Origin: Saccostrea echinata
Lineage: Eukaryota
Direction of reading: 5' to 3'
Assembly: GCF_033153115.1 (NCBI RefSeq)
Contig: NW_026889778.1
Location: 37,758,001-37,822,000, forward strand
Length of the DNA: 64,000 bases
Of the stretch, positions 8,213-47,700 are shown in pieces. How positions within the stretch are numbered: position 1 is the first letter of the stretch; the number at the start of each line of letters is the position of its first letter. A model generated the notes under the pieces. It saw nothing but the letters and a program-made list of their open reading frames with translations. It searched no databases and was not told the DNA's origin. A program made the position numbers and the translations under genes.

Positions 8213-9283
8213 CTATACTTTTCTACCGCATAGTTTAATTGCTTCTACCTTGAAATGTGTATCAGTAAAAAAGTAAACAAATGGATTCAAAATCCCATTA
8301 ATGACTACAATATCTGGCAGGTATTCTTCAAAGATGTCTTCCATTTTAGAAAATTGTTGTCGTGGATAGAAATATCTTTTGGTGGCTTGGATAGTCTGAA
8401 ACAATGTGATTGTAACGAAGCTGGCTACCAAGAAAACAGTTACAAAAGCAAATGTTATCGCTATTCGTCTATTCTTTTCTTCCTCTGAATCTGTAGCCCG
8501 TCTCTTTGACTCTGGTTGATTCGCTTTCTCTTTTTGAACACTCTTTCCATCCAGTGTTCTGATGCCGCATTCTTCTTGTTCTTCTCCGGTACTGAGTTCT
8601 TTAGCCTTGCTTTTCATCTGCCTTTTTGTTATGGCTTTCTTAACAAGAGCATTTCGTATTTTAACTTGAAATATAACTACAAGTATAATACAAGTGAACG
8701 CAGCCACGAATACGAAAGCATAATATAGGAATGTTAAAACATTTCCATCATATTCGTTTTTTACATTGCACCGAGTAGCATTAATGTTTTCTACTTGTAC
8801 ATATCTTTTTCCATGAATCAAATAGACTGGGAATTGTATGAAAAAACCAATACAAATAACACTTAAACACATCACCTTAGATTGTTTCGTTGTAATTTGT
8901 GATTTGAAAGGTGTGCAAATTTTTCTGTATCTTTCGAAACTGATAAAAAAAGCAATCAGAAGAGAAGCCATCCCTACAGAGTTACCAAGATAGTGAGACA
9001 CCTTACATATCAAATCGCTCCCCCAGGCCACTTGATTGTAAACCGATATCATTCTGCTCATTTCTTTTGGAATGTGAGAAATACATAGAGAGAGATCGAC
9101 TACAGAAAGAAAAAGGACGAAGATCCTGTAATTTGAGGCTTGAGCAGTACGTGTTCGAAAGATATGTATAATTACACCATTGCCAACTATTCCTATGATG
9201 TTGAGAATGTAAGATATAGCTCCCAGTGGGGCTCTTTCTATTCTCCCTTCTACATTGTAATCCAGTGGTGGCTCATTTACCAT
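8213..9283 (-). CDS. Class A (rhodopsin-like) GPCR, orphan peptide-receptor-like, intronless CDS, 356 aa
   Basis: Seven hydrophobic segments; TM1 GN (GIVGNG), TM2 LSVVD, TM3 Cys and ERYRKICTP, ECL2 Cys, TM7 NPFVY. Start taken at ATG 9283; the upstream ORF part crosses a polypyrimidine-AG acceptor at ~9316 (5' UTR intron). Confidence 0.92.
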   Translation of the reverse strand: MVNEPPLDYNVEGRIERAPLGAISYILNIIGIVGNGVIIHIFRTRTAQASNYRIFVLFLSVVDLSLCISHIPKEMSRMISVYNQVAWGSDLICKVSHYLGNSVGMASLLIAFFISFERYRKICTPFKSQITTKQSKVMCLSVICIGFFIQFPVYLIHGKRYVQVENINATRCNVKNEYDGNVLTFLYYAFVFVAAFTCIILVVIFQVKIRNALVKKAITKRQMKSKAKELSTGEEQEECGIRTLDGKSVQKEKANQPESKRRATDSEEEKNRRIAITFAFVTVFLVASFVTITLFQTIQATKRYFYPRQQFSKMEDIFEEYLPDIVVINGILNPFVYFFTDTHFKVEAIKLCGRKV

Positions 9284-10237
9284 TCTGAACAATAATTTCG
9301 AGAAATGGAGATATCTGGAAAAATAAAAAAAAAATACTTGGAATGATGAATTGCAAATGATTAAAAGCATACCTTAAAATATTATATAAATATTAGTTTA
9401 GCATTGTTTCTGATATGTTTATATTGGCAATTTTATCTGGAATAGGAAGTTCTGCAGTTTTAACATATTTAAAGTTATCTACAAACTTTTTTGCATATCT
9501 TCAACAACTATCTGACATATTCTCCAATACTATCTTATATTTACCCTAAAACCTCATACAAAATGACGGTGTAAGTACTGATAAATTCATAAGTTTATCC
9601 TGAGTATTCAAATATTATTATAATTGTTACCCCTGATTGTTGAAGATGAATGGAATAAAATTCTACTTCGAAAAATGAACAGTTATTTTCTTATTTTTTG
9701 GCCACATTCCTCTGTTTGTCATGCAACAAATCTATTGAAAGTTTTACCCAGTGTCTTTTAAACGAGTACACGCATCTCAAGGGCGATACATAATGGGTAT
9801 TCCATGAGGAGGTGATGCATAGATCCGCCTGCTTTTCATATGGATATAGAAAAATTATTTATATGATATCTCCAATTTTGTTAAGGATAATCACCATGAG
9901 GATTCCAACAGATTCTTTGAAGGCTTTATCTTCAAAGACTAAATTGATATTGTCAATATGGAACTCAAGCATCTTTTAATATTAAGTTCAAAGTACTTGT
10001 GCGAAGGAGCAGAATGATTCTTAAGAAAGTCATTTTGAAAATGACCATCGATATGATGTGCAAATTTCCGAATTTCACTTTTTATTGAAGAAGCAATTGT
10101 TTACGGCGTCATAAAGCTAATTATCTCTAGGAATGGTTTTATAAACTGTGTGATATCATACATTTTGATGTTTGTGATTTTGGATTCAAATAAATTGAAA
10201 AATTCTCTAAGTTGTTTTCTTAGAGTTGTTCGAATGT

Positions 10238-20700: not shown

Positions 20701-22052
20701 AGAGGGTTTTTCTCCTTCCTCAATCCATTTGACCTTTGACCTTATGCATTGACCTTTAAATCTCATATTCTTTATTTTTTCTACTTCTCTTTGTTTTTCT
20801 TCGAGTTCATTTATTGACTGATCTGTTAAATTCTGTTATTTCTCTTTCCAATTGTTGCTCTCTTTCAATAATTTTCTTTTTTTTATACGTTGAAAATGAA
20901 ATTGAAATTGACTTCCCTCTTATTTCCATTAACAAGACATCAAGAAAGAGTTGATCACTAATGGTAAATTGAATAGCATCATTCTCAAGGTAACTGATTT
21001 TTTCCATACTGGGCAGGAATATTGGATTTTAACCTCCTCAATCTTACATTTTATTTGTTCAACATATTATTTTTCATGTAGCAGAGAATTATTGAATTTC
21101 CAGAAACCATTTCCTTTTTAAATTCATTTAATTTACAGTGTAGTAGAACTGGAGAATGATCAGAACAGTAACTACTTTCAAACTTTACACAAGGCATCAT
21201 AGTTAGCATAGACTCAGACATCAGGAAAAAGTCAAGTCTAGCTTGTTTGAGTGGATTTTTTCGTCTCCAGGTAAACCTTTTTAAATTTGGATTATCTTCA
21301 CGAAATACATCCTTAAATTTAAAACATCCGTAAGCTTCATTACTTCAAGTTTTGATTTTGGGTTGTTTAAATTTTTGTAATTCATTGAATCCAAATCCTT
21401 ATCAAAAAGTAAATTAAAATCACCCCCTATAACAATATTTTGGGAAGAGTAAATCTCCTCTTTTTTATAAACTAAACTTAAGTAGAAATTAGGTGTGTCA
21501 GAGTTTGGACCATAAATATTTATTAGTAAAAAAGAGATATCCTCAATAAAAACATCCAAAATTAGAAGATTACCACCAGTATCCCTATATTCATTGATGA
21601 TTTTTAATTCACAGTTATTATTAAAAAGGATAGCAACTCCCCTTGAATTGGATTTGAATGAACTAAAAAAAAAGCTTTATATCCCCATTGTGTTCTTATA
21701 AAGTTTTCATCTTTTCCCACAAAATGAGTATCTTGTAAAAAATAAACATTATAATTCTTAGGTATGAAATTCTTAAGCACATCTCTTCTTTTATGAATGT
21801 TACCAAGGCCTTGACAGTTTACTGTAAGTATTTTTAGGTTGTTGTTCTTATTATGATCCATATATTTTTTAAAAGTATGGATGAAAATATTGCTGACCCC
21901 ATACAAGACAGAAACAAAAAAAAAAAACAAATAAATAAAAGATAACAAAAGTGTATATACAAAAGTATGTGGATTGTCTGAGAAAACATGCCTTGTTGTT
22001 TTTGAGAGTAGAAAGTTTATACCAAAAACATATTTAATTGATATTGCTAATT
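17739..22052 (-). mobile_element. L1/Tx1-clade non-LTR retrotransposon, 5'-truncated (no ORF1), ORF2 frameshifted
   Basis: APE endonuclease motifs (TVNCQGL, FLQDTH, NIYGPN, GGDFN), RT motifs (KSPGPDG, KNWRSI, GCRQGDPISPYLF, YADD), YGGLKM; poly(A) tail seen as T-run at 17739; exact 15-bp TSD gagcaagccaaattc at 17724-17738 and 22053-22067. Confidence 0.93.
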
Positions 22053-22955
22053 GAGCAAGCCAAATTCGTTACCTAGATCAAACTCACCAAGGGCTTCCAT
22101 CGTAACATAAATTTCGGCGCTCTCTGAAACTTTTTATTTTCTCTGCAATGAAGTTATCTGATTGGTTTGATCAATGAATTTGAGTTATATATTTGATTGG
22201 TTTGATCAATAGATGGAACGTTTTAAAACACAAACGTCATTTAGGAGTCTTGTGTCATTTAAAGTACTTGTTTCCAACTTTATGGGAGATACAGGCGGGG
22301 CCCAGCTCGATCTTTCGCCCTTGTCTTAATCCCCGCCCGGTATATCTCATACAGTAGAAAACTCGTATTTTAAATATAAAAAAACCCACTGACATGCTGT
22401 TTTTATTAAATAATGTTGTCTAAGATCTGATTTAGATATTTTGGTGTATACATGTCGTCAAATATTACACAGTTTTTATTTCAAAGTTCTAAAGAAATGC
22501 TCAATCAAACAGAAATGCTTTTATTTGATATTTGAGTTCTATAGAGAACTTTGAACACTTTGTAAGAACATACCAAATAAGATACTGTGAAAACAAAATA
22601 GAATGTCCAAATAATTATTTTCTAAGATTTTTTTTTCTAATTGCTAAAGTGTATTTATCTGTTATAATGGCTTTTTCAGTTTCCTCAATAGATGCTAAAA
22701 CTGTGATCCTAAACATTACAAGTGGCTTCAGCATGCCATATTCCAGTATTCAAATTAAATATGATTGCATATGATCATTTTAATACGGAATACAAGAGCA
22801 GTGCATTTTTAAGCTACTTTAAATCAACTTCCAGCATAACAGAAAAATAGGATAGAAGTATTAATTAAGATATCATTTTTATGGCCAATTTAAAGAACAG
22901 TAAAATGATTTTCATTATTTCAGGAAAACCTACCAAACAGAACTGATGGCACGAA

Positions 22956-25900
22956 ATGGCCAAGAGTCAGAAGAAGAAGAAATTAGCAAAAAGCAATTCA
23001 GGTATAATATTTACCCACAACTATTTATAAATATGAAAATATCTCAAACAGGATTTGAAATGTTCATTCGGTTTGACTTAGATCCAGAATTATAATAATC
23101 TGTGTAGAACGAGAATACATGTCATTTCCATACTAGAAAAGTCTAATACTGTAATACTATAGTTAACATAGACAGATATTAAAATGTTACTTTTACCAAA
23201 TTGTACTGTGAAGTCATAATTATTCTTTGGGGAATAATATTCGTGGATTTCGTCGGTCACCCTTACCCACGAATTTGGATCCCCTCGAACAATGACCTTT
23301 GTCAATGTATTCATTAAATGTAATGTGTCCATTAAACTTTTTCATATACTAACTACCCTCGAAATTACGTCCATAAGAACCGGTGAAGTTTGGTTACTCA
23401 CGAACATTGACCCAAACTATTCCACGGTAACACCCCCCAAGAAAATCTGTATAAAATGACATCAATCTTATATATATAAGTTTCAGATTACCCAGCCTTT
23501 TTTGAAGAGGAATTGTGTTCACGTCTCGGTAGAGAGTGGTTTTCGTTCGGTACCCATATAGGCTTTGAACACAGTTCTCTGGTCCAGCTACAAGATCTGT
23601 TTCCTAATAGCCCACAAAAATGTGCCAAATACATGCTCCAGCAGTGGAATACCGTGGTATTGAAACATACATTGAAATGTGTTCCTTTGCTATACTTTGG
23701 ATTAAAGGAAATTAAACTTCTGGATTTAGCAGATGACCTTTTGAAAGCAGCAAATTCTGGTGAATATTTATGATTTATTTATATATAAACGCAATCTCGG
23801 CAAACTTTTAATTTGAAAAGAGAGAGAGAGAGAGAGAGAGAGATTCATTTTGTTACTGTCATTTGTAGATAAACCGGAGTCCAAACATGAGAGTATTTGG
23901 GATGATCTTCTTCAGGACTTAACAAAGATTTCGTTTAAAATGATGCCTGAACTTGATGAAAAAGGTTGATTATGGTTTTTTGAGTTTTTGACATTAAAGT
24001 TTCAATTGAAAATACGTTCAATTCTTCTTACTTCTTAGAATTAATAGTGCAAACTTTTCTCTTCAATTAATACAACTTTCATCTGATTTTTAAAACATTT
24101 TAGAGAGTAAACCCAAAGAGGGAGATACATATATCTTTAAGGACTGTAGTAATATTGTTATTGGACAAGGTTCAAAGCTCACTGTTAATCAGGCATATAA
24201 AGAATTAGCAAATCCGAAAGGTAAGTGTGTAATTTTATATATATATATATATATACATGTGTATAGAACTTGTTTAATGAGTCTGAAATGCATTGACTGT
24301 ATACAATTTTAGTCCATCCTTCATTTTTTCTTATGATACTGAAAGTAAGAATTTTTTATGACGTTTTGAAGGAAAACAGCAAAAGAAAGATGCTATTCTT
24401 CTCGGTATGCTTCAGTGTATACTGTACCCAAATGAAACTGAAGAGCCAAAGGAAATGAATCTGCAAAAGCTTGAGACTGCTTTCACCAAGCTCTTTGGAA
24501 CATTTATGACTGATAAGAAGTCTTTTTACCAAGTTTCAGGAATTAAGTTAAAATCCTTTTTGCAAAGATATCCCCTGAAGTTTAAGTGTACAAAAAGAAG
24601 ATCAGAATTCGCTGTTAAATTTATACCAGGAGATGATAAATGGCATGAGTGCTATGAGCTTAATATGCTTAGAAGCGCATCCCAGACCAAACAGTGTAGT
24701 GAAAATATTTCTAGATCATGTTCAGCTGTTTCTGATCATCAGTCAGATACTGAACATGAAGACGAAGATTCAACAGATGAAGGATGGGTCTACGTGAGGC
24801 ATAAAACCCATGAAAAGAACAAATCAAAGCACAAAGACGAGAATGATTTGTTTCCGCCTCTGCCTCGTAGCGGAAATATATCACAGAAACCCATTTTTCA
24901 AAAATCATATGCATGTGTAACATCATCCTCAAACAAAACTGCGAAAGATTACAGAAAACTTGAACAAACTACATCGCAATCTTCGAAGCCAGTATATATG
25001 CAGCAAAGAAAGGAGTACACAATACCGAGTAGTGGAACAATTGCTGATATAAAAGATCTCTTTGCCTATCTCAATAACTTTAAATCAGGTCACCACATTC
25101 TTTTTACTTCTACTCAGGACATGTCCGAAAATATTGAAGCGCTGGCCCTTGTTCCTTGGCTAAGCGTTTATGATTTTGATAAACATAGTCGAGTAGATGG
25201 GCTTTTATCAAGAATAGAGGACAGTATAAAACAACGGCGATCAATTCACGTTTGCACATGGAGGGATCGTCCTCATCTTTCCCACCATGGGACACAGTGG
25301 TGTTTGCTTCGCGGATCTGTGCAGGAGGCTGATAGTCGAACGCCTGACGATTATATACAATGGATGTTCTATATAAGAGAAAACTACGAAAAGCAGATTA
25401 TAGAATTAGCAAACATATCTGATAATTACTGCACATTAACGTTTGTTGTATTTTGGCCTTCAGATCTTGAGTCATGTCAATATATGTTCAAGGCACTTTC
25501 AAAAATAGCAGAACTCATTGAAAACCCTAACATTGTTATTTGCTGTAATGAAAGCAACGCATCGTCAGAGAGTAAAACTATGCTGGGACTTCTGAAACCA
25601 AAGCTTACGCTGATCAATGATTTTAAGGAAATACTACAGGGAATATCAAGTTTGCTTGGTGAAAAATACTCAATCCAAAGCGTAGAGTACAAGCTGCCAA
25701 CATTTGATAAAACAGATGTTCCACATATTGATGAATCAATGGCTGCCATATTCCGAGAAGACTTTGAAATTCTGTACTTGGACAACCCATATCGCAAAAC
25801 TAAAGAAAGCGAAATGACTATGGAAGAGTTACATGAAGAAGAGAAGCATTTTTATCGGGGAGGGAATCTCCACTGGTTTGCACTTTACCTTGCTGGGGCT

Positions 25901-28623
25901 GGTCATTTTGATGCAGAAAGAGATCTAACAGCAAATATTGTACGGAGAATAAAGCATTTCTTTTTAGAGCCATTTAAATCTGGTAAAATTACAATATATC
26001 ACGCCCCGGGTGCAGGTGGATCCACTCTTGGACAAAGAGTTTTATGGGAATTGAGATCCATGACTCCCTGTGGACAAGTACAAATGAATTCCAGGACATT
26101 GGTTCAGGACTTAGTTGACAGAATAAAAATATTATTTGAGAAAACAAACTTACCTGTAGTATTGCTTATTGATGGAGAAGACCAGCAAAGGTTTACATAT
26201 TTGCATAAATTTTTAGAGAGAGCTCATTTGATTGTGATATTATTACACATCAAACGTTGCACACAACCAAAGAAAACCATAAGTTTGAAGGAAACCGAAT
26301 TCTGGTTACCTGGGACAGTTTCGTCAAATGAAGCAAACAAACTTGGAATCAAATTTTCAAATCAGTGTGACTCACCGGAAAAGAAAGATCAAATAGACAG
26401 TCTAGTAAGAGATGTTTCTGATGGTAAAGAGCACCTTATGTACGAATTCGGAATGGTAGCATTCTTGTCAGAGTTTAAAGGTGTACGTTCTTTTGTGCGT
26501 GGATACCTTCAGCTTGATAAAAATCCCACTGAAAAGCTCCTCTCGTGGCAGAAGATTATAGGATACCTTTCCCTGGTTTACTACTATGGTCAAACATCAA
26601 TGCCTTGCCAGTTCTTTTCAACTCTTTTGGAGTTACCACCAAATTATAATGTTACCATGGAGGATTTTCCCTTCCCTGTTCAGATGTTCATTGTTTCTTG
26701 CTCAAATGAAAACAAACGCAATACCATACGAATATGTCACTATACAGTTGCAAAGGAAATATTAGAGCATATGCTTACTTGGAACAAAAAGAAGATGGGT
26801 AAATGTGATAGCTCTGGGTTGAGTATTACAGCTCGATACGAACTCTACGAATTTTTGACCATGTTCTTGGAAGACATTAAAGCAAAGAAAATTAAAAGCA
26901 TTGTTAAGTCTGGAATCATTGCAGATATTTTAAGAAGAACTCTTATTTTCCGAGATAACCAAGATGTCGGTGACAATGAAGTGCCTGGAAGAAGGAAACT
27001 GTCTCGTCTGATGGCAGATATTGAATGCAAAGCGCCTTACATGGAAAGGATTGACATCCTAAAGCGCCTGACTGATATCTTCCCAGAGGATGCTAATTTT
27101 CATGCGCATCTTGGAAGAATGTATTCAATATGTAGACCAGAGGATGAAAAGAAAGCTGAAAATTGTTTCATCCAAGCAGTTGATTTATGTAGAAAGAAGA
27201 AAGCAGGGAAATCTTATGAAAACTTGGATGACAGTGCAAAACATACACTTAAGCATGTTTATCACATGTTTGGTATGTTTTACTTGCAAAGAATTACGAA
27301 GTATACAGGAAAATCCCACGGAGATAAACCAGAAATTCTTACACCACAGGATAATTTCGATAGAAAATAAGGGAACTACTACAAGACGCTAAGGATGCTT
27401 GCTACTATTTCTTTGAGACAAGAGAATTGACAAATTTGATTGGATATGAAGAAGCCTATGGATACGTAGGAGAAATAGCAACAAGGTTAAAAATCTGTGA
27501 ATTTATTTACAGGCATATGACTTTCAGGGAATTTGAAGAGTTTCTAGAAGTTTCACCTGATTCAGAAATAGTCAACTTCGTGAAGGATAGCATCACAACA
27601 ATTCTTGAGTTGTTTCTGCAATGCTACGGATGCGTAGATTCTGAAGACCTGCCGCCTGGGTTTTTCAGATATATTTATTGGTACAACGCACTCTTCAAAT
27701 CCCAGGCAAAAGAACTGGAAAGGCTGGACATAACAGAAGATATTTACTCTCGGCGCTTACATGTAGCTGTTATTAAACTGAAATATGGAAAGGATGAATC
27801 CCTTGGAACCTTAGAAAGGATATCCTCAAAATCAGACATTGAAGAGATTGTGCGTATTTGTGAACAGAATTTCAAGGATGCTGACCGTGGCGGATTTACT
27901 CCAATTAGAAGCGCAATTGACCTTGAATACAAAGATTGGCTCAATGCCATTAGACATGAAAAATTTTCAGAAATCTATTGCACTGCAGACGTCTTACGGA
28001 GAGTTCGTCATTGGCATGATACTTTGAAAAGTCCGAGTTCAAAGTTCTACTTGTTCATTCTTCTCAGCATACTTGGCTTTGGATACTCAGAAGAAACATC
28101 ACCAAATGATGAAATGCTGAGGGAAGCAAACGAGTTACTAGAACAGCTGAGGAAAGGAACGAAAGCTTTAGCAAAACCAAGAAGTCCGAAAGAATGGTAT
28201 GGTAAAGGACCAGGAATAAAATGCCTCATACCAAGTTGGAAAGTCAGGCATAGCGGTGAAAATCGAGTAAACGCCGGGGACTCTAGTACCACGCATTTAG
28301 CAGTATTCAAAGGGACCATTACACGACCGCATACACAAAGGCAAACTGGATATATCAAAATGGATCTTGGGGACAATAAATTTACCGTTCGAGTGTTTTT
28401 CATTCCAGTGAGAACTAAAGAACCGCTTGTGGGAAGTCGATACGCTGGAGAGAGAGTTGAATTTGTCTTGGCCTTCACATACGCTGATGGATATGAAGCA
28501 TACAACGTTGCTTTGTTAAAGAAATATCATTGTTTCAACTGCAATAGAAAAGTCGAAATTACAAGTGACAAGTTCTCTGTACAATGCAAATGTGGAAGGG
28601 TAGTAACCAAGTCGGATAATTGA
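22956..28623 (+). CDS. SAMD9/SAMD9L-like STAND NTPase with N-terminal death domain and RHIM-like motif; ~1594 aa if the frameshift at ~27365 is corrected
   Basis: Coding exons 22956-23001, 23487-23759, 23869-23964, 24104-24220, 24372-28623; all introns GT-AG, phase 1, and joining in frame. SAMD9-family motifs: WLSVYDFD (SIR2-like), Walker A HAPGAGGSTLGQRVLWELR, Walker B LPVVLLIDGE, TPR-like FHAHLGRMY, OB-fold ERVEFVLAFTYADGYEAYNV. Confidence 0.88.
23207..23427. mobile_element. MITE in an intron of the SAMD9-like gene
   Basis: ta-ctgtgaa ... tccacgg-ta ends with inward-facing ttcgtgg / ccacgaa motifs; similar element at ~41004-41224. Confidence 0.5.
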
Positions 28624-29784
28624 ATTAGCTGTGTGACTGATGTTGAAATTATTTCGTATGAAATTATATTGATTACTGTTGAAATTTGTGTTTTGTACTT
28701 AACTGGTGGTAACATATCAGACAGTCATCAAGGGACCACTTTTTTTCCTTCTTTCATCCGAGTGCATGGGGTTGCACGTCATGACATGACAGTTCTTTCT
28801 TCTTTATGCAACTTCAATAAATCAGTTATGGTTTTATTCAGGACTTGATGAAGATTGACATTTATTAAAGTCACGACAAGTGGCTTTTTGTTCATTGGGA
28901 TTGTGGTTAATTTTCTTGTTGATATTGTGCATGGTTGACTACGAAAAGAAAAAAAAACCAGTTTTATGAAATGATATGAGGCTTTGCAATTTTATTTATC
29001 AATTACATTTTATATAATATATCTTTTCCAGTCAGTTAATTATTGAATTGTTGACTAAATACTGCTTTTAATGATTGTTTATGAGGGCAATGGTTTTTAT
29101 TGATAAAAGTGCTTTTTCTATTCAGGCCAATTTTTTTCCCAAGGGTAAAGAACCTGTTTGGTCTATTTTTAAACATATATTTGCTCATGAAGCTGTGATT
29201 TTCAGAAGCTAGACTAAATATGTTCATTTTAGAAAAATAGCGCTGAAACTATAAGTTATGTTTCTACTTTTAACACCATTTTATGTACGGTACTTTTTCA
29301 ATTTGTTGGGATTATAAAATCTTATGTATACTGAAACCATTTTTCAGCACTCTTTAGCTGAACAAGGTTTGTACTTAGGTTGTCAGAAATAATTGTATCA
29401 GTACAATATATCATGATATAATTTAACATGTTAAATGAAGCGTAAAGAAGTAAAGTCTGCATATATTTTTAGTACTGTTGTCTGCTTGTCATCAGTCTTT
29501 GAGATATACATTTGTTAAAATCAGGACTCTCTGGAAAGTATGAGCATTTGACGCACAAAAGCAGTGCATTTATTTTTGCCTTTATTTCGACAAAAGAAAG
29601 GAATACATGTTTATTTTCATATTTAAATACCAAAAGTAACAAGCAGGTACCTCACCGGAGATTCAGGAATAATTTAGAGTACCAATTATAATTTGTAAGA
29701 GTCGATTTTTAAGAGAATGCACTGGATTATAATTCATCTAATTTATAAAATATTTCCAAGCAATAATCTCAATGATCCTTATAC

Positions 29785-34375: not shown

Positions 34376-36316
34376 CTACAGAGTTGTCATTTTAGTGACC
34401 TTTGTGGATCTTTCTTCACTGTCAACATCCGTGTTAACTGACACCACAGAGATGGTCTGAGCCATCTCTCCTGTCCCACAAAACTCCTTCATGGACATCA
34501 CTCCAAACTTCACCTGCTCCACTCCCATGGCAACCCCAGCCCTGACACGGTTGGCTGCAATGCTTCCTGAGTCTTTGATGGTTGTCAAGTACTGGGAACC
34601 AGATTCTCTTATGGAATGCACTCGATTGCGGACTTTCTCCATCTTCTTTTCCAAAGTTATTTTCACTTCATTTAAGGTATAGCTGGTGTTGCTTCGACCT
34701 TTCTCAAGGTACTCTTCTGGAGTAGGTGTTGCACATTTCTTTGGAGATGACCTAGGTGTCCTAGCAACTGGAGAATTTACAGGGACTTTAAGAAGGGATT
34801 CCTCATTTTGGTAAGAATCATCGTAGGAATCTTGGTCATCCAGACTCCTGCTCGATGAATTCTGATCATCCGTATAAACTTCAAAAGTGTAATCCATGGC
34901 GACCTTGGGTTTTTCTCTTTGTTCAACAAGAACACAAGAGCATTTACAAAAATGTATTGCACAAAGTTTAATCATTCCAACAAGCAAACCAAACACCAAA
35001 GCAGTTAGAGCACTCACACCTCCATATACCATGCCAACCCATTCAATGGTAAAAAGTTTTGTAACAGCAGTTAAGGTTAGGTTTGCTGTATCATTTCCAT
35101 GACTGTTAATCAGCACACAGGTAAAAGTCCCATTGAAAACCCCTCGAAAGTTGGTAAATGTCAAAGTATTGTTCTCTGTTATGAACAGTTCTGAAAAATC
35201 TTCTATACTATGCTTGTATTTCAAATGTGACAGAGTTGTTATGTTTATTTGTTCCAGCATTTCTTGGTTATACTTATGGCTTATTTTTACTCCCTGAGGT
35301 GTTATCCAGTATCCAATAGCATAGATTTCAGGTGATGCTCTGCAATGAATGGATCCACTGGAACTGACAGGAACTTCCAGAGAGTTAGTTACTTTATCAA
35401 TGTGAGGAATATCACACTTTAAATCATTCTGCGTCAAATCTTGTAATTTTGTTCCCCGCATTCTGAAAGGAGAGTAGCAGTCTAGCAAGTCTGGATTGGA
35501 AACTCTTAGTTTTTGCTGTGTCAGGAATTCTAGGAAGTTCTCCAATTCACAAGAGCAGTCCCATGGGTTTCCATGCAATCCAATTACTGTGTAATTGTTT
35601 ATTTCTGATACAACCTTCCCTGATAGACTTGTTAAAGCATTCTCACTTAATTGAAGGGTTTTCAAATTAGTCAAGTTCTGAAAGGTGCCCTCTGCAATCC
35701 AGTGTATATTATTGTTTCTCAGATCTAACTCTTCTAGAAAATACAGTGGATTAAATAGACCCAGAGGAAAAGAATAAATCTTGTTGAATCTTAAATGAAG
35801 TGTTTTCAAATTAGCTAATCCTTTAAAAGCATCTTTTGGAAAAGTCTGTAATTTGTTTTCACTAAGTGAAAGAATCTTCAAGTTCTTAAACTCACTAAAA
35901 GCACCTGAGGAAATTTTCACAATATCATTCGAACTGAGATCTAATTCTTCAAGTAGTCCTGGGTTTCCTACATGAAGCATGTCTATTGTGGTTAATGCAT
36001 TTCTGCTGAGATCAAGTATTTGAAGTCCTTTTAAGGACTGGACTTCAAGAGGGAATGATTTCAAACCCCCAAATATGTTCAGATGTCTAACAGTGAAAGT
36101 TTGGGGGATGGACTGGATAGAGAATCCCTCATAATAAGAGTTGCAGGATGCCTCTTGTTTAGAATGCTCACAAACACAGAACTGAGGGCATTTTGGGCTT
36201 GAAGAGTTTTTCTTTGAAGCATGCGTAATGACATCCTTAATGTATACAGACTGGCTGATCATATGTTTGTTCCATGCTGCTATCAAAAAGACAACAGCAA
36301 GAACTTTCTGTAGCAT
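34376..36316 (-). CDS. LRR-Ig single-pass membrane protein (LRRN-like), 646 aa, intronless CDS
   Basis: Signal peptide; LRRNT CPQFCVC; about 7 LxxLxLxxN repeats; LRRCT NPWDCSC; Ig domain (HCRA..YW..FTC); TM helix VGMVYGG..LLVGMI; long cytoplasmic tail. Confidence 0.93.
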   Translation of the reverse strand: MLQKVLAVVFLIAAWNKHMISQSVYIKDVITHASKKNSSSPKCPQFCVCEHSKQEASCNSYYEGFSIQSIPQTFTVRHLNIFGGLKSFPLEVQSLKGLQILDLSRNALTTIDMLHVGNPGLLEELDLSSNDIVKISSGAFSEFKNLKILSLSENKLQTFPKDAFKGLANLKTLHLRFNKIYSFPLGLFNPLYFLEELDLRNNNIHWIAEGTFQNLTNLKTLQLSENALTSLSGKVVSEINNYTVIGLHGNPWDCSCELENFLEFLTQQKLRVSNPDLLDCYSPFRMRGTKLQDLTQNDLKCDIPHIDKVTNSLEVPVSSSGSIHCRASPEIYAIGYWITPQGVKISHKYNQEMLEQINITTLSHLKYKHSIEDFSELFITENNTLTFTNFRGVFNGTFTCVLINSHGNDTANLTLTAVTKLFTIEWVGMVYGGVSALTALVFGLLVGMIKLCAIHFCKCSCVLVEQREKPKVAMDYTFEVYTDDQNSSSRSLDDQDSYDDSYQNEESLLKVPVNSPVARTPRSSPKKCATPTPEEYLEKGRSNTSYTLNEVKITLEKKMEKVRNRVHSIRESGSQYLTTIKDSGSIAANRVRAGVAMGVEQVKFGVMSMKEFCGTGEMAQTISVVSVNTDVDSEERSTKVTKMTTL

Positions 36317-41700: not shown

Positions 41701-44700
41701 ACTGTGACAGAATATCACTTTTAATCAATAAATATATTACAGTATTTTACTGTTGAAAATGTAATAAATAGAGGATATTCAATGTTTTGTAGATTTCACG
41801 AGTGCGAAGCACGAGTGAAAATATAAAAAAAAATCCTGTCTCACGAGTGAAATAAATTCCATATTCATCTACAAAACATTGAATTTTTGTCTATTACGTT
41901 TTTTGTAATTTTCCCTTTGCCTCTTTCTTTTCTTAACACAATGTCATAGGCTTCACATCATAGTTGAGCGGTTGAGACGTCATAGCTTACCATTGAAAAC
42001 ATTACATAGCATGGATTTTAGCAACTTATTTGGGAAGAAATTTGCAGTTTTAGCTCTATCAAGATGGTTAATTACTATCTCTATCTTATGACAGGCCAGA
42101 AATTATTTTTTACTTACTTTGATATCCTTTCACGCTGTGAGAGAATATCATTTTGGTATCCTTTCACACTGTGAGAGAATATCACTTTTATTCATTATAT
42201 AAATCACAGTATTTCACTGTTGAAAATGTAATAAATTGTATGATATGTTGTTTTCGTGTCTTAAAGTATGAAAAATACACTGCTAAAGACACAATAATTA
42301 AAACATGCATCATCTGTAAGAAATGTGATACTCTGTGTTTTAAAGTGATACGAGGATGTTTTTTTTTTACTATGTAGGTTTACTCTTTGTGGCTTCCACT
42401 CTAGGATTCTGTAGATATGATGATGTGGATTTGATCAGGGTATGTCATATGTATATATGTGTACTATGAAATCTGTAATTCCAAACAAAGTTTTTTGTAT
42501 CATTATTGATTTAATGGCAATTAAATTGACAAGTAGATTCAATCCTATAGTATATAAATGATGATATAGGAACAGGGCTCTACATTAATGTTTGTCCAAT
42601 TGTCTGTGTTTTGTTCATTTTGTGATTGGATTAGTCAATTTCCACAAATACTTGTTCAACTGGACAAGTAAACTTTTTCCCATAATACGTTCCATTTCCA
42701 TTAGTGAACTCTTCAAAATTAGAGGCGCGTTTGGTCGTCTGACTGGGACAGCATGGCATTGCAGATAATAAAAAACATGCCAATCTCAATCCAATTTTAA
42801 ATGTTAAATGTATTAGTCATTCCAGTTAAAGAATAGAAGAACTAAAAAACATGTAAAGAGAGCAAGAACCCTAAATTTATCATCCATTAATAAAAAATAC
42901 GACTTTTCCGAGGCATGTGTATTGTATTTAGATGTACCATAAGATAAATAGATACATACGATCAACAATAGATATACATGTAAATTGATATCGTTGTCAT
43001 TCCTACACTTGATGTATATAAAGTCCACAACAATAAAGTATTTCATTTGCATTTTCTTAGGAATTGTTCATCGACATTTAACATATTGTTTACATGTTTA
43101 TGTTACGTTTGTCCCAGAAATCCCGCGAGATTTGTCCGTTTTCCGACTTTTTCACAAAAGAGCGCACTAAGAAGTATAACTCTTCCATAGTGGAAATAGA
43201 ACGTATTGAATGGTATAAATATCGTGATTTTTTTTTTGAATCATGAAAATCAAATACGAAACATTCTTAAGGGCTTAGTTTTGTCTCAACCTATATCCCT
43301 AAGGGATGAGCACCATTGAGACTAGGTTAAAGACAGCAGTAGTTTATGTTTTATATCAGAAATGTTTTTAATTTCATGATCAAAAAGGTTTTTTTAAGTC
43401 AATAATATCAGTCTTGATAATGAAATTCTCTACAATTTTCTTTATATCTGTTCGGAATCAGACAGGTAAAAAATGCATTCAGACAAGTAACATTTGTTGA
43501 CAACTTCTCCAATGGACAAGTCAATGTTGAGCCCTGAGGTCTGGTTGTTGCACAGTATTTACTTGATGATGATGAACTCTTTTAAAATACTTTAACTAGG
43601 GGGTTACCACTGGGAGTAAGCAGGATGCCTTTATGGACAAACTGATAGACCTGGTGTGTATCAAGGATGCTGCAGATGACCCTGACAATAAGTCAATGAG
43701 AAACCCAAATGTGGTCAGGTAAAAAGTACAGGACTGATGTGATCACTGGTCAGGTTTGGATAAAGGTGTTAGGTAAGGTTGTTAGGAGTATAGGTGTGTC
43801 AGCTTAAGCTGTAAGTAGTACAGGTGAAGTCAGGTAAAGCAGTCATTGGTACAGGTGAGGTCAGGTAGGCTTTAAGAATTGCAGGTGTGTGTGTCAGGCA
43901 AGACAGTAAGGAGTATAGATTTGTCACTCAGGCAAAGCAGTGTGGAGTATGGATTGTCAGGTAAAGCAGTAAGGAATATGGATTTGTCTGGTAAAGCAAT
44001 AAGGAGTATGGATTTGTCAGGTAAAGCAATAAGGAGTATGGATTTGTCAGGTAAAGCAATAAGGAGTATGGATTTGTGTGGTAAAGCAGTAACTGAAGGA
44101 GTATGGATTGTCAGGTAAAGCAATAAGGAGTATGGATTTGCCAGGTAAAGCAATAAGGAGTATGGATTTGTCTGGTAAAGCAGTAAGGAGTATGGATTTG
44201 TCTGGTAAAGCAATAAGGAGTATGGATTTGTCTGGTAAAGCAGTAAGGAGTATGGATTTGTCTGGTAAAGCAGTAAGGAGAATGGATTGTCAGGTAAAGC
44301 AGTAAGGAGTATGAATTTGTCTAGTAAAGCAATAAGGATTTGTCTTGTAAAGCAATAAGGAGTATGGATTTGTCAGGTAAAGCAATAAGGATTATGGATT
44401 TGTCAGTTAAAGCAATAAGGAGTATGGATTTGTCTGGTAAAGCAATAAGGAGTATGGATTTGTCAGGAATAGCAATAAGGAGTATGGGTTTGTCTTGTAA
44501 AGCAGTAAGGAGTATGGATTTATCAGGTAAAGCAATAAGGAGTATGGATTTGTCAGGAATAGCAATAAGGAGTATGGGTTTGTCTTGTAAAGCAGTAAGG
44601 AGTATGGATTTATCAGGTAAAGCAATAAGGAGTATGGATTTGCCAGGTAAAGCAATAAAGAGTATGGATTGTCTGGTAAAGCAATAAGGAGTATGGATTT

Positions 44701-47700
44701 GCCAGGTGAAGCAATAAGGAGTATGGATTTGTCTGGTAAAGCAATAAGGAGTATGGATTGTCAGGTAAAGCAGTAAGGAGTATGGATTGTCAGTTAAAGC
44801 AATAAGGAGTATGGATTTGTCAGGTAAAGCAATAATGAGTATGGATTTGTCTTGTAAAGCAGTAAGGAGTATAGATTTGTCAGTTAAAGCAATAAGGAGT
44901 ATGGATTTGTCTGGTAAAGCAATAATGAGTATGGATTTGTCTTGTAAAGCAGTAAGGAGTATAGATTTGTCAGTTAAAGCAGTAAGGAGTATGGATTTGT
45001 CTGGTAAAGCAATAAGGAGTATGGATTTGTCAGGTAAAGCAATAAGAAGTATGGATTTGGATTTGTCAGGTAAAGCAATAAGGAGTATGGATTTGTCAGG
45101 TAAAGCAGTAAGGAGTACATGTATGAATTTGTCTGGTAAAGCAATAAGGATTTGTCAGGTAAAGCAATAAGGAGTATGGATTTGTCAGGTAAAGCAGTAA
45201 GGAGTATGGATTTGTCAGGTAAAGCAATAAGGAGTATGGATACGATTGTCAGGTCCTGTTGTGGTTTGGTTAGACCAAGGGTTAGACTGTTAAGGTATTA
45301 GGGAGTACAGGCTCTTAGGCCATAAAACTGAGATCACTTTTCAGTCTCAGTCTCACTTTTACAAAAGAAAATAACTGTGGAAAAATGAAAATTAAGATCG
45401 AATGTGAAAACATCCAAGTTTGTGGGTTTAGATTAGGTATAGACAGGTAATATATTATCTGAGTAAAAGAGCCGATTACCTTTTATTATATGCAATGCAC
45501 ATAGTGCTTTATAAATTCGTATGGCTACATTCACATATCAACATCAGTTTTGTGAGTTTGACTTAACGAAATCTGATATCATCAAAATAAGTAATTACAT
45601 ATCAAACCCCTTTTCTTTTTTGTACTGAAAATTAGTTCTGTTTTGTAACAAAGTATGCTGTAGACAAAAAAGATGTAGACACTGTACATGAAATAATATA
45701 TTTTTTATTTACTAAATACTACTCTATCATAAATTGCCTAATCTCTATTCTGTATATTGAATTATTTCATATCATACTGAGTGTGTCTTGTTATAAGTAA
45801 ATACAAGGGCACTGCAAAGTGGAGCATCCCCTCCCAAGAGAACATTGATCCAGATGTAAATTATTGTTTGCATGCTCACTCACTCATAGTCACCTGCACA
45901 CATATCCCCTCCAATTTCAATGCGAGGGGATAATAATCTAATGGAAGCAGGACATGAGGTGCTGGATGTATTGTGTTAAAAAAAAAAAATTCCCAATTTT
46001 CAGCGAGTCCATGCCACTTGAGGATCAGTTTCAACATGACTCGCATTTGATGAAAACTCTAGTCAGCCAAGAAAAAGTGGATTCCATGCTCAATCCTAGA
46101 CTCTCCCTCCTGCCGCCAGATTTACAAAGGCAGTATGAGGTCGCTATGGTGGAAAAAGGACTGGACAAAGACAGGTGTTTTATATATATATAATATATAT
46201 AAAATAAGTAGTAGAGACATATTCTATGTGCTCATGTACATCAGGATTTTGAACACTGTTGAATGGAGGCAAAAAACAACATTGTTTAAATCCTATAAAT
46301 TTGACATATACTTACAGTTAAACTTGTCTAATCCAGATGTTGTGTTTTCCAAAATCTTGTCCAATAAGATGTTAACTTAAGTCCCTTTCAGTAAATTCAA
46401 CTGTCATTAAAATGTTGTCTAATCCAGAATGTTTTCTCATCCGACCAATTTCCATGGAACCATTGATGTTCGGATTATAGACAACTTTTACTGTATATAG
46501 TTAAATTACGTTACTATTCATAAAATAACATTCCATTCCATTTCAGGCCACCTAAGCCTGATATACAGAGTCTAATGGAGTCTGCAGAAAAACTGTCACA
46601 GGATCTTCAGAGGCAACAGGAAATTCTCCGAGAAGTCAACAAAACTGTAAGATTTTGCCCATTAAACCAAATATTTCCCAATTATTATTTCCATTCTTAA
46701 AGGAGATTTCATGTAAAACAGAGCCCACATATTCTTGTCTAAAATGTTAGTCTAATCTTGATAAAATATTCCTAAATAGTGATGATTATTACATTGGAAT
46801 TATTTTTTGCTCTAAATATTATGTGAAATGTGAAAATGTCTCAAGGGAGATAACTTTTACCTTACTAGCACAATTTATAAAAATTTCTCATTCTACATGT
46901 GAAGTCATTCTTTGCAATCAGATGCAATATTAATATATTCATTTAGGTGGGATAAGCACACATAATTATAGATGAAAAGTACAAGATAAATATGAAAAAC
47001 TTTTGGAGTTAAAAAATTTCAAATATATGTAGATCTATCATGTTAAAATTTAGCAAAAGAAACAAAAGCCCTGCTGATTTGAAGTGCTTTAAATCTCTGA
47101 ACTACCAGCTGGATAGTTACAAAGAGACTGACAGCACGTTTGTAATGAAGTTATGTTCATTAATTGTGTGATGTGCTATTCCCTATTTACCTTGATGTCT
47201 TATTTCATTTCAGTTTATGTACGAGTCTCCAGATCCATCTCGAGGAGAGATTGTGAGTAAGACAATGAGTCTGGTGCTCTCCGAGTTATCTCAGCTCGTG
47301 ACAGGATTCACCTACTGCTATGAGAACGAGATGAGTCACTGGTGTAACAAATCTCCTCCCGTACTCAATGAATTAGGCCCAGCATTCAAGAGAGTTTATA
47401 ATTTACTGCAGACCTTTGTCAAGGTGTGACCAGGAATTGGATTTTTCTCTTTTTTTTTTCATTTTAAAAAAATGTTGAAATTTCTACATATAGACAAGCT
47501 TATTACTCATTTCTGGTTGGCTTCCTTTCTAAATATACACTGGCATTGATCCTTGTTTATTAAATACATATAGCCAAAAGTTGTGTTACACACTGAAAAA
47601 TAACCCAGGATGTAAACTTAGATGGGTTTTTTTCAGCTTTTTAATTCTCAGAGGAGTTTTTATGTTGCAATTTAGTATATTTTTGTTTTAAGGACCCTCT

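Follow-up and report, generated by a model that had tools for sequence, protein, structure and literature searches.

A SAMD9-like STAND protein of the oyster Saccostrea echinata with death-domain, RHIM-derived and LOTUS modules and without AlbA_2

Background

How might a SAMD9-like protein signal when the effector domain of its human relatives is missing? This question is raised by a gene in a stretch of 64,000 nucleotides from Saccostrea echinata (contig NW_026889778.1, positions 37,758,001 to 37,822,000; hereafter the window, to which all coordinates refer, with all features on the forward strand). The gene is intact and transcribed, consists of six exons and comprises about 1,596 codons. 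It is already known that death-fold N-termini and the loss of AlbA_2 occur in invertebrate relatives of SAMD9: Death, CARD and Pyrin domains have been described at the N-termini of SAMD9 cores from molluscs, other invertebrates and fish, AlbA_2 has been lost in some family members and apoptosome-like assemblies have been predicted (Mekhedov, Makarova and Koonin 2017, PMC5445408). RHIM, HTH and winged helix are however not mentioned in the text of that paper, and within the SAMD9 family the oyster protein's RHIM-derived exon and its LOTUS domain appear to be new. In addition, the architecture described here is backed by splice-junction evidence, and forms with and without an AlbA_2-like insert were found as paralogs within one genome.

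Results and discussion

Domain architecture

From its N-terminus, the protein consists of a basic tail, a death domain, an acidic linker, a RHIM-derived beta motif, a LOTUS/OST-HTH domain and a disordered linker of about 120 residues, followed by a SIR2-like domain, a lysine-less P-loop NTPase, a helical array, a beta-rich C-terminus and a zinc ribbon-like cluster. The SIR2-like domain of the SAMD9 family (25091..25816) was found by phmmer against human SAMD9. Full-length human SAMD9 chains were matched with an E value of 4.1e-11 over about 375 residues (229-603 of the query), which align with chain index 257-658 of 37ht; if residue 156 is the first of this 1434-residue chain, these are about residues 412-813. 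The alignment to SAMD9 (lyhhpgcggttla / pvlllvdd) also covers the start of the STAND-type NTPase (25817..26215), which contains a deviant Walker A motif (YHAPGAGGSTLG, 25997-26038) without lysine and with an upstream His, and a Walker B-like PVVLLIDGED (26153-26182). A lysine-less P-loop is a trait of the SAMD9 family (PMC5445408). Both the similarity to human SAMD9 and the deviant P-loop thus confirm the SAMD9-family core of SIR2-like domain and P-loop NTPase assumed in the initial annotation, which had been made from the sequence alone.

For the C-terminal 398 residues no sequence similarity to human SAMD9 was detectable. They include a beta-rich region, a putative OB fold, followed by a Cys cluster (together 28294..28596). 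The previously noted cluster can be described as a zinc-ribbon-like CxxC...CxC motif (28531-28596) whose four Cys are invariant in the four paralogs of this genome, while its matches to zinc ribbons are weak (Pfam E 0.087; RNAP subunit P E 0.28).

Exon 2 (23481..23759, 279 nt, phase 1-1) is, judged from profile searches and structure prediction, a true death domain, as had been proposed. The exon itself reaches 16.2 bits against Pfam Death (E 0.011), which is under the cut-off of 22.6, whereas its closest relatives score 23-31 bits and exceed it. A profile of the exon 2 family searched against the PDB matched the death domain of FADD (E 4.4e-5), then those of PIDD, RIPK1 (E 1.6e-3) and ankyrin. 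The AF2 model (pLDDT 91.9) resembles the FADD death domain in Foldseek with a TM of 0.76-0.82 and an rmsd of 1.6-2.2, and that of RIPK1 with 0.76, whereas CARDs reach just 0.4-0.5. Exon 3 (23869..23964, 96 nt, phase 1-1) codes for the short acidic linker, which is kept in the alignment of P0003, P0014 and P0023. A single annotated protein contains the module of death domain, linker and motif in S. cucullata (P0003) and likewise in Crassostrea angulata (P0023), and the module is conserved between clades with only about 51% core identity.

The RHIM-like motif lies in exon 4 (..YIFKDCSNIVIGQGSKLTVNQ.., 24104..24220, 117 nt, phase 1-1). Sequence comparison, mainly by way of its relatives, supports that this exon derives from a RHIM exon and has since diverged. 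It has no Pfam match of its own, and direct similarity to the RHIM-like exon of paralog L012 is not significant (p 0.5). The homologous exon in clade-B proteins, however, matches Pfam RHIM with 11.9-12.2 bits (E 0.14-0.18, cut-off 20), the L012 exon likewise reaches 12 bits, and for P0014, P0023 and the L012 exon alike RHIM is the sole or second family matched at this score. Locus C62 of the same genome contains a canonical RHIM (23.7 bits) together with a death-domain exon (30.1 bits). The RHIM-related exons show in-register similarity to this canonical RHIM with p values of 2e-4 to 7e-3; for exon 4 of the window the alignment is ungapped and in register (shuffle p 0.007). The RHIM-like motif of the initial annotation therefore stands as far as ancestry is concerned, while the window copy itself is weak and the most decayed of the RHIM-type copies: with I-V-I-G it departs from (I/V)-Q-(I/V)-G, V replacing the conserved Q, and both flanking N are gone. 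Y, F, I, I and G are present at nucleation-critical places, and an aliphatic tetrad is required for RHIM nucleation (preprint 10.64898/2026.02.19.706818).

Exon 5 (24372..28623, stop codon 28621-28623) is a single large coding exon. It opens with an N-terminal helix and a winged helix of the LOTUS/OST-HTH type (24374..24658), a more precise assignment of what had been called a possible HTH. Residues 1-95 of the exon are modelled by AF2 with a pLDDT of 82-94, and the top four matches in VIA-align were TDRD5 (Z 8.9), the LOTUS domain of MARF1 (8.5), TDRD7 (8.1) and the LOTUS domain of Tejas (8.0), with an rmsd of 2.1-2.3 over 70-74 residues. Foldseek (TDRD7/TDRD5, TMt 0.68), Atlas (OST-HTH, 0.92) and Pfam (WH_Egal, E 0.053) point in the same direction. 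The LOTUS domain is of an RNA-binding type. A disordered linker of about 120 amino acids rich in S, K, T, Q and E follows (24671..25039), as seen from the AF2 model, the paralog alignment and composition. Residues 100-222 of the exon have a pLDDT below 50 and no secondary structure, and the AF2 model contains no folded domain between the LOTUS and the SIR2-like domain.

Absence of the nuclease

Neither SAM nor AlbA_2 was found in the window protein by Pfam searches, in the paralog alignment or in the AF2 model, in agreement with the initial annotation. At the position of the disordered linker, the paralogs L012 and L013 as well as P0011 carry an insert of about 190 amino acids with AlbA_2-like motifs, the C-terminal end of which aligns with the end of the AlbA_2 of SAMD9. 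Based on these motifs and the partial alignment, the insert is a candidate AlbA_2; a profile of the insert alone gave no match in the PDB or in Atlas. The same genome encodes two full-length insert-bearing paralogs with 36-39% core identity (C29:17.0 Mb and C15:13.76 Mb).

The further suggestion that the N-terminal modules stand in place of the nuclease does not hold. In L012, a RHIM-like exon with the core FQIG lies immediately upstream of a large exon that retains the insert, and at least the RHIM exon is therefore older than the loss of the nuclease. It is more likely that the death fold occupies the position of the vertebrate SAM domain, as proposed by Mekhedov et al. 2017 (PMC5445408).

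Comparison with known systems

The oyster protein shares with the antiviral STAND-like proteins SAMD9/SAMD9L of human (PDB 9zjr, 37ht and others) homologous SIR2-like and P-loop regions, the lysine-less Walker A with upstream His, the order of SIR2, NTPase and long helical C-terminal half and the single large coding exon. It differs by the absence of SAM and of AlbA_2, the nuclease to which vertebrate SAMD9/9L owe their effector activity, and has death, RHIM-derived and LOTUS modules instead. Like RIPK1, Drosophila IMD and the C62 gene, it combines a death domain with a RHIM-class motif (RHIM/cRHIM) across a flexible linker. In contrast to RIPK1 and IMD, the order is reversed, the death domain preceding the motif; a kinase is absent, the core Q is missing from the motif, and the module forms one protein with a STAND NTPase, whereas RIPK1 and IMD are free adaptors.

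In amphioxus RHIM-NACHT and fungal NWD2/HET-s a STAND NTPase carries a short amyloid-type motif at its N-terminus, where death-fold domains otherwise sit, and signalling templated by oligomerisation has been proposed (Kajava et al. 2014, PMC4262963). These are however NACHT-type NTPases with canonical motifs, while the oyster protein has a SAMD9-type NTPase and a degenerate motif plus a death domain. Bacterial Avs9, a SAMD9 analogue in phage defence, likewise has a STAND-type switch and exchangeable N-terminal modules, but kills via the active site of AlbA_2 (PMC12680541), which the oyster protein lacks.

Proposed mechanism and alternatives

Since AlbA_2 is absent, the window protein cannot act via cleavage of tRNA or other RNA, and it probably signals by recruitment of partners. 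The core would sense a ligand, possibly aided by the LOTUS domain with its nucleic-acid-binding type of fold, and NTP-dependent oligomerisation would then cluster the N-terminal death domains. Homotypic assembly of the kind known from the apoptosome, PIDDosome and Myddosome may then bring in death-domain adaptors, a candidate partner being the IMD/RIPK1-like adaptor at C62, in which a canonical RHIM precedes the death domain. We infer cell death or NF-kB signalling as the output. Of the output proposed initially, the adaptor type instead of RNA cleavage remains the natural reading of a protein with a genuine death domain, a RHIM-related motif and neither SAM nor AlbA_2, whereas amyloid signalling is its weakest link because of the decay of the window motif, which would assist assembly at best. 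Taken together, we consider it somewhat probable that this intact SAMD9-family STAND protein acts as an adaptor by death-domain clustering.

Alternatively, the protein might be a non-autonomous partner that forms mixed oligomers with the insert-bearing paralogs by way of their common STAND core, as a sensor, helper or brake, its N-terminus merely tuning localisation. The two full-length paralogs that carry the insert in the same genome, and the layout of LOTUS and core common to all paralogs, would fit this idea. Such assemblies are however uncertain at the core identity given above, and the conservation of the death-domain module across oyster clades speaks for an independent function. We regard such a role as improbable.

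Less likely still, the death domain and the RHIM-derived motif could be an integrated decoy, i.e. a bait for viral inhibitors of death folds or RHIMs, whose engagement, instead of nucleic acid, would activate the STAND core. A bivalve iridovirus has captured a CARD+RHIM gene (PMC12452177), the N-terminal modules lie on symmetric phase-1 exons which are easily shuffled, and the exon 4 motif is diverging fast between clades. But a bait-only N-terminus would leave the protein without effector, as no other output domain is visible in the absence of AlbA_2.

Integrity and structure of the gene

In the assembly, an A4 run (27364..27367) causes an apparent frameshift between two large ORFs, one of 987 amino acids in frame 2 with its stop at 27368-70 and one of 398 amino acids in frame 1; this shift of frame is not mentioned in the initial annotation. 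Transcript evidence was taken from contigs of four runs (X1, X2, X3 and X5; at most three samples from two studies), whose type was guessed and which are likely RNA because the contigs skip introns. The stop, the several decayed paralog fragments elsewhere in the genome and the lack of a protein from the window in the protein collection searched could indicate that the frameshift is real and a decaying copy is merely transcribed. This is very unlikely, however: all four runs, which represent up to three samples, show an extra A behind 27363 at full depth, which makes exon 5 one continuous frame. Over 4.2 kb both flanking ORFs are otherwise open, and the first shares 91% identity with its ortholog from S. 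cucullata. This ortholog (P0001) reads ...DNFDRKIRELL... without a break, the homolog P0002 also reads through, and paralogs have uninterrupted frames of 1391-1629 amino acids. Errors in assemblies commonly take the form of miscalled homopolymers. From the four runs and the S. cucullata ortholog we conclude that the gene is intact.

Every proposed exon is joined in contigs aligned to the window, with GT..AG at all borders, which bears out the proposed splicing of four small exons to the large one, although no single contig of the four runs covers the entire gene. The junction 23001|23481 is present in an X5 contig and in an X3 loose end reading TTTCAGATTACCCAGCC, 23759|23869 in an X5 contig, 23964|24104 in an X3 contig and 24220|24372 in X3 record 17, one contig across exons 3, 4 and 5. 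The stretch 26422-28700 is unbroken in contigs except for the one-base insertion. The acceptor of exon 2, initially placed at 23487, had to be moved; the one used is 23481, 6 nt upstream, which adds two in-frame codons (V-S). The end of exon 1 was likewise corrected, to 23001.

Database models of relatives, which often start within exon 5 (P0001, P0002, P0004 and P0006), and the short proteins P0014 and P0023 might suggest two genes, a short death-domain/RHIM adaptor made up of the small exons and, downstream of it, a SAMD9-like gene with a shorter N-terminus. This is already contradicted by X3 record 17, by P0023 itself, which continues from the death domain through 45 residues at the start of the large exon, by the single 1572-aa RefSeq model P0003 of the same layout and by exon 5, which begins in phase 1 and offers no in-frame ATG ahead of residue 12.

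At the 5' end, a non-coding exon, of which the 3' end was located (21238..21271, donor GT at 21272, ...tctccag|gtaaac), is spliced to the acceptor at 22923; the sequence at 21249-21271 is identical to the loose ends that contigs of X3 and X5 show ahead of 22921-22923. Coding exon 1 (22924..23001) starts with the ATG at 22956 in good Kozak context and contributes 15 codons plus 1 nt (phase 1), which code for a lysine-rich N-terminus; the same basic N-terminus is present in P0003 and P0014. A short uORF would begin at an upstream, out-of-frame ATG (22946).

Gene structure and transcript support

The SAMD9-like gene (coding region 22956-28623, plus strand) lies in AT-rich animal DNA and contains two long plus-strand open reading frames placed head to tail, one of 987 aa in frame 2 (24407-27370) and one of 398 aa in frame 1 (27427-28623). 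Among proteins, the 987-aa frame best matches P0001, the Saccostrea cucullata ortholog, with 91% identity; a paralog on contig C25 corresponds to the S. echinata protein P0006, to which it is 100% identical over the overlap.

To place transcripts on 22900-28700, contigs from four sequencing runs (X1, X2, X3 and X5; at most three samples from two studies, their RNA nature being a guess) were used. In the searches, each exon was treated on its own and the halves of exon 5 apart. The contigs jump 23002-23480, 23760-23868 and 23965-24103, all borders being GT..AG, and record 17 of X3 leads from exon 3 to 24102-24217 and straight into 24369-24565. All four splice junctions proposed in the initial annotation are thus present, and the skipping of introns argues that the four runs are indeed RNA. 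The death-domain exon is spliced in as had been proposed, but not at 23487; the acceptor used is 23481, which lies 6 bases further upstream, in frame, and adds V-S. Exons 2, 3 and 4 measure 279, 96 and 117 nt, respectively, and are all of phase 1-1. Loose contig ends that precede 22921-22923 are identical to 21249-21271, a stretch that closes with ..tctccag and is followed by gtaaac, from which it is concluded that a non-coding first exon ends at 21271.

Within 22946-23001, an upstream ATG is found 10 nt before the start codon in another frame and would yield a short overlapping uORF ending in exon 2; the ATG at 22956 has the better Kozak context of the two. Within intron 1, 23229-23293 reaches a depth of up to 95x in X1 as compared to 3-11x for the exons, and its contigs continue into unrelated sequence; this stretch is a dispersed, expressed repeat. 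The intron in the 5'UTR contains open frames on the minus strand (21281-21948) that resemble a non-LTR retrotransposon in its endonuclease part.

The two large frames are mutually out of frame, frame 1 being open from 27364, and meet at the run agAAAAtaa. In each of the four runs one more A follows position 27363, supported by the full depth (11.1/11.1, 7.8/7.8, 6.4/6.4 and 2.2/2.2), the ortholog P0001 and a homolog, P0002, are unbroken across the site (..NF(D/E)RKI(R/K)ELLQDAKDAC..), and paralogs of the same genome are open over 1391-1629 aa without interruption. For these reasons the break most probably reflects either an assembly error in the homopolymer or a private allele. That the gene is a pseudogene was rejected on the basis of the transcript contigs carrying the extra A. 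With five A residues, the coding length becomes 4,788 nt or 1,596 codons.

The SAMD9-like core

Membership of the core in the SAMD9 family was borne out by a phmmer search of the 987-aa frame against full-length human SAMD9 chains (E 4.1e-11), in which query residues 229-603 align with chain index 257-658, corresponding to about residues 412-813 provided that the 1434-residue chain begins at 156. The match extends over the SIR2-like domain and into the beginning of the NTPase, and homologs in Mizuhopecten and Pinctada bear the name SAMD9-like. The Walker A motif YHAPGAGGSTLG at 25997-26038 contains no lysine, has an upstream histidine and aligns with lyhhpgcggttla of SAMD9. A lysine-less Walker A with a conserved upstream histidine has been described as a peculiarity of this family (Mekhedov et al., PMC5445408).

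For the C-terminal 398 residues, neither the sequence (searched for the SAMD9 C-terminal half, TPR and OB models) nor a profile (searched for SAMD9 and OB) gave a match, and their CxxC...CxC cluster yielded weak zinc-ribbon matches only. The 987-aa frame shows a weak match to the TPR of MamA (E 0.2). No NACHT or NB-ARC match was obtained with the window frame, and its relatives gave weak matches to nSTAND5/7 and KAP only. The oyster protein may work like an NLR, as had been suggested initially, yet it is not an NLR.

Death domain

On its own, exon 2 scores 16.2 bits on Pfam Death (PF00531; E 0.011), the curated cut-off being 22.6. An exhaustive HMMER search gave ten representatives, the six nearest of which reach 23.2-31 bits on Pfam Death; of the remaining four, two are more distantly related proteins with multiple death domains and the two weakest are without a Death match. 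The profile of this family (alignment A1) finds the FADD death domain in the PDB with E 4.4e-5, followed by those of PIDD, RIPK1 and ankyrin, each over the full domain. The AF2 model, a six-helix bundle (pLDDT 91.9, pTM 0.80), superposes on the death domains of FADD, ankyrin, PIDD, TNFR1, RIPK1 and RAIDD with TM 0.64-0.82 and probability 1.00, as compared to only 0.35-0.51 for CARDs. The domain encoded by exon 2 is a real death domain of the DD subclass, in agreement with the first reading of the sequence.

When this exon and the related protein P0014 were used as queries against the S. echinata genome, nothing was found beyond the exon of the window itself, and residues 1-200 of P0003, a homolog from S. 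cucullata, retrieved P0003 and no other match. Local HMMs for the death domain and the exon 4 motif detected no such exons upstream of the paralogs L011 (contig C25) and L013 (contig C15), and the death-domain HMM none within 6.7 kb upstream of the paralog L012 (contig C29).

Predicted LOTUS domain

The first 300 residues of exon 5 were modelled with AF2 using alignment A2, and residues 1-95 are confidently placed (pLDDT 82-94). Among 48,161 chains compared by VIA-align, the best four are all LOTUS domains, namely TDRD5 (Z 8.9), MARF1 (8.5), TDRD7 (8.1) and Tejas (8.0), although Z values of 8-9 are middling on that scale; the superpositions comprise 70-74 of about 75 residues at an rmsd of 2.1-2.3, with Egalitarian and Oskar lower in the list. 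With Foldseek the winged helix matches TDRD7/TDRD5 (TMt 0.68), and Atlas features give an OST-HTH score of 0.92 with 19 of 30 matches being OST-HTH. Pfam PF12872 (LOTUS/OST-HTH) gave no match, the single weak one being to WH_Egal (E 0.053, 14.5 bits). According to the model, the region formerly annotated as a possible HTH is a LOTUS/OST-HTH domain, on which four independent lines agree. Domains of this type have been shown to bind G-rich/G4 RNA (PMC7498356) as well as DEAD-box helicases (PMC5458760), and our literature search found no paper in which LOTUS occurs together with SAMD9.

RHIM-like exon

Exon 4 of the window has no Pfam match. Homologs of this exon are found in P0003, P0014 and P0023, where the core reads ..NCSG(V/I)A(V/I)G(K/D)N... 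P0003 is a single RefSeq model of 1572 aa with the same order of death domain, linker, motif and LOTUS domain, and in P0023 from Crassostrea angulata the homolog runs on into the large exon. On Pfam RHIM (PF12721, cut-off 20), P0014 scores 11.9 bits (E 0.18) and P0023 12.2 bits (E 0.14), in both cases as the sole family match besides Death, as compared to 23.5-25.6 bits for the true RHIMs of S. echinata, which exceed the cut-off. With the canonical RHIM of contig C62 (..IHIHNSKNVQVGNNNVMVVNQ..), P0003 (shuffle p 2e-4), P0014 (1.6e-3), P0023 (2.6e-3) and exon 4 of the window (7e-3) can all be aligned in register and without gaps.

A further copy belongs to L012. This exon of 129 nt (L012:6502-6630, i.e. 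G000:C29:17014501-17014629, plus strand, phase 1) adjoins the upstream side of the large exon and, like exon 4 of the window, ends with ..PK before the gt. Its core is A-F-Q-I-G-D-H-N, and Pfam RHIM (12.0 bits) is its single family match; the exon can be aligned to P0003 (p 6e-4) and to the canonical RHIM (p 1.2e-3), and when it is compared directly with exon 4 of the window, no significant similarity is seen (p 0.5).

The RHIM tetrad (I/V)-Q-(I/V/L/C)-G is fitted neither by the window (I-V-I-G) nor by clade B, which includes P0003 and P0023 ((I/V)-A-(I/V)-G), the core F-Q-I-G being found in the exon of L012 only. The window exon is the most diverged copy, with the exchanges N to D, G to N, Q to V and N-x to G-S. 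In register with the human RIPK3 core NIYNCSGVQVGD (PMC9918910), it has Y, F, I, I and G at the places of V450, I452, V458, V460 and G461 as judged by inspection, and a deep mutational scan has found four hydrophobic residues and the glycine to be essential for nucleation by RIPK1/RIPK3 (preprint 10.64898/2026.02.19.706818).

Because the exons of P0003, P0014, P0023 and L012 align with the canonical RHIM, and those of P0014, P0023 and L012 show weak Pfam RHIM scores, exon 4 is best read, as far as sequence comparison goes, as the descendant of a RHIM exon already present in the ancestral oyster SAMD9-like gene. Of the RHIM-like motif proposed at the outset, the ancestry is thus supported, whereas the copy itself has lost the Q and is without a Pfam match. 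A whole-genome search with the back-translated pattern N-C-S-G-(V/I)-x-(V/I)-G produced 10 matches as compared to 12 in the reversed control, all in non-coding context, so that no further copies of the clade B motif were found. A resemblance of exon 4 to the J-segment strand of Ig/TCR chains in the PDB (FGxGTKLTV, the lone phmmer matches) was dismissed as a chance beta-strand likeness.

Absence of the nuclease domain and comparison of paralogs

An N-terminal SAM domain is confined to the vertebrate SAMD9/9L members, and none was detected in any exon of the oyster gene. Likewise, no Pfam match to AlbA_2 was obtained in the window exons at E<=10, and residues 100-222 of exon 5 have no structure in the AF2 model (pLDDT <50), leaving nothing folded between the LOTUS and SIR2-like domains. 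The reported absence of both domains is therefore upheld. AlbA_2 on the N-terminal side of SIR2 belongs to the core architecture of the family and has been lost in some members (PMC5445408).

In alignment A2, an insert of about 190 aa is located exactly between LOTUS and SIR2 in L012 (C29:17.0 Mb), L013 (C15:13.76 Mb) and the relative P0011, opposite a clean gap of the same length in the window protein, and the clade of the latter (P0001-P0009 and the C25 paralog) is without it. The insert contains motifs typical of AlbA_2/Schlafen-like domains (F.LK, VSLWNT, IVI..D, FEIPxSHG and LWxR), and a profile search gave a partial alignment in which the LWiRq.. near its C-terminus is paired with ..LFVRDGTSS, where the AlbA_2 region of SAMD9 ends. 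Since the profile of the insert alone matched nothing in the PDB, and Atlas gave no usable match, the insert is regarded as a probable, not a proven, AlbA_2 domain.

According to the initial annotation, death-fold and RHIM-like adaptor modules stand in place of the nuclease. This does not hold for the RHIM part, as a RHIM-like exon is also found on L012, which keeps the AlbA_2-like insert; at least this part was not exchanged for the nuclease, and so the nuclease would have been lost in a lineage already carrying it. The pattern of L012 fits the proposal of 2017 that the position of the polymerising SAM domain of vertebrates is taken by death-fold domains (PMC5445408). The same study described Death, CARD, Pyrin and FIIND N-termini in invertebrate members and loss of AlbA_2 in some, and put forward an apoptosome-like model for the family (PMC5445408). 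What seems to be new are the RHIM-derived exon, the LOTUS domain, the RNA support for the architecture and the paralogs seen side by side. Taken together, the initial observation is confirmed with corrections, and its interpretation is supported in part.

At L011, an open frame of 265 aa encoding a HEPN domain of the DZIP3 type (28.5 bits, exceeding the cut-off) was noticed on the plus strand (L011:6376-7170, G000:C25 ~10,520,375-10,521,169), 1.5 kb upstream of P0006, the SAMD9-like paralog without AlbA_2. Judging from its sequence, this predicted RNase could be a further N-terminal module of the exchangeable kind, or else a gene of its own.

Possible signalling and implications

Human SAMD9/9L restrict poxviruses and lentiviruses and are involved in bone-marrow failure syndromes; the AlbA_2 tRNase is regarded as their output. 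Within one oyster genome, paralogs of the same core exist with and without the AlbA_2-like insert; two have RHIM-class exons, and the one in the window has a death domain as well. As paralogs with and without the insert share the core, this suggests that the SIR2-NTPase-helical core is a portable sensor and switch with exchangeable output, and the oyster paralogs provide a naturally occurring system in which sensing can be studied apart from killing.

In such a protein, the core would sense a ligand and undergo nucleotide-controlled oligomerisation, which would cluster the death domains and recruit a death-domain adaptor. A candidate partner, predicted from its sequence, is a kinase-less IMD/RIPK1-like adaptor gene on the minus strand of contig C62 (L031:611-1021 and L030:8869-9087, i.e. 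G000:C62 ~4,202,868-4,205,020; RHIM 23.7-25.6 bits, death-domain exon 30.1 bits). Here the death-domain exon is located 1.5 kb downstream of the canonical RHIM on the same strand, the domain being split over two exons, and the RHIM frame continues into a tandem repeat (IIDHRQYF x6).

A more far-reaching and rather unlikely reading is that the SAMD9 core acts as a general switch driving a necrosome/IMD-like pathway of the oyster. Clustered upon activation, death domain and RHIM-class motif would together seed the C62 adaptor, which would form a filament or amyloid leading to NF-kB activation or cell death, and the LOTUS domain would supply an input in the form of RNA (G-rich/G4) or a DEAD-box helicase. 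If true, this would bring together three systems which have been studied apart until now, namely SAMD9, RHIM amyloid signalling and LOTUS domains.

Mass mortalities caused by viruses are known from bivalves. Looking in the literature for SAMD9 expression in oysters following OsHV-1 yielded no usable result. A CARD+RHIM gene has been captured by a bivalve iridovirus (PMC12452177), which indicates that the death-domain/RHIM network matters in infection. The window protein is a candidate upstream receptor for this poorly mapped network, and the LOTUS domain, if confirmed family-wide, would be a new lead on what the invertebrate SAMD9 relatives sense.

Genomic neighbourhood

The 64-kb window contains no other SAMD9-like or death-fold genes. 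On its minus strand, a rhodopsin-family GPCR (8213-9370; 7tm_1, E 8e-28), a leucine-rich-repeat protein (34376-36316; LRR_8, E 1.5e-32) and a HEXIM homolog (52759-53715; E 3e-20) were identified. The 2-kb bin at 44001-46000 has a GC skew of +0.41 as compared to an absolute skew of about 0.15 or less elsewhere, and 55750-55884 consists of 135 N (gap or mask). Outside the window, decayed SAMD9-like C-terminal fragments with in-frame stops, i.e. pseudogene copies, are located at G000:C22:8.0-8.1 Mb and C15:13.748 Mb (loci L006-L009).
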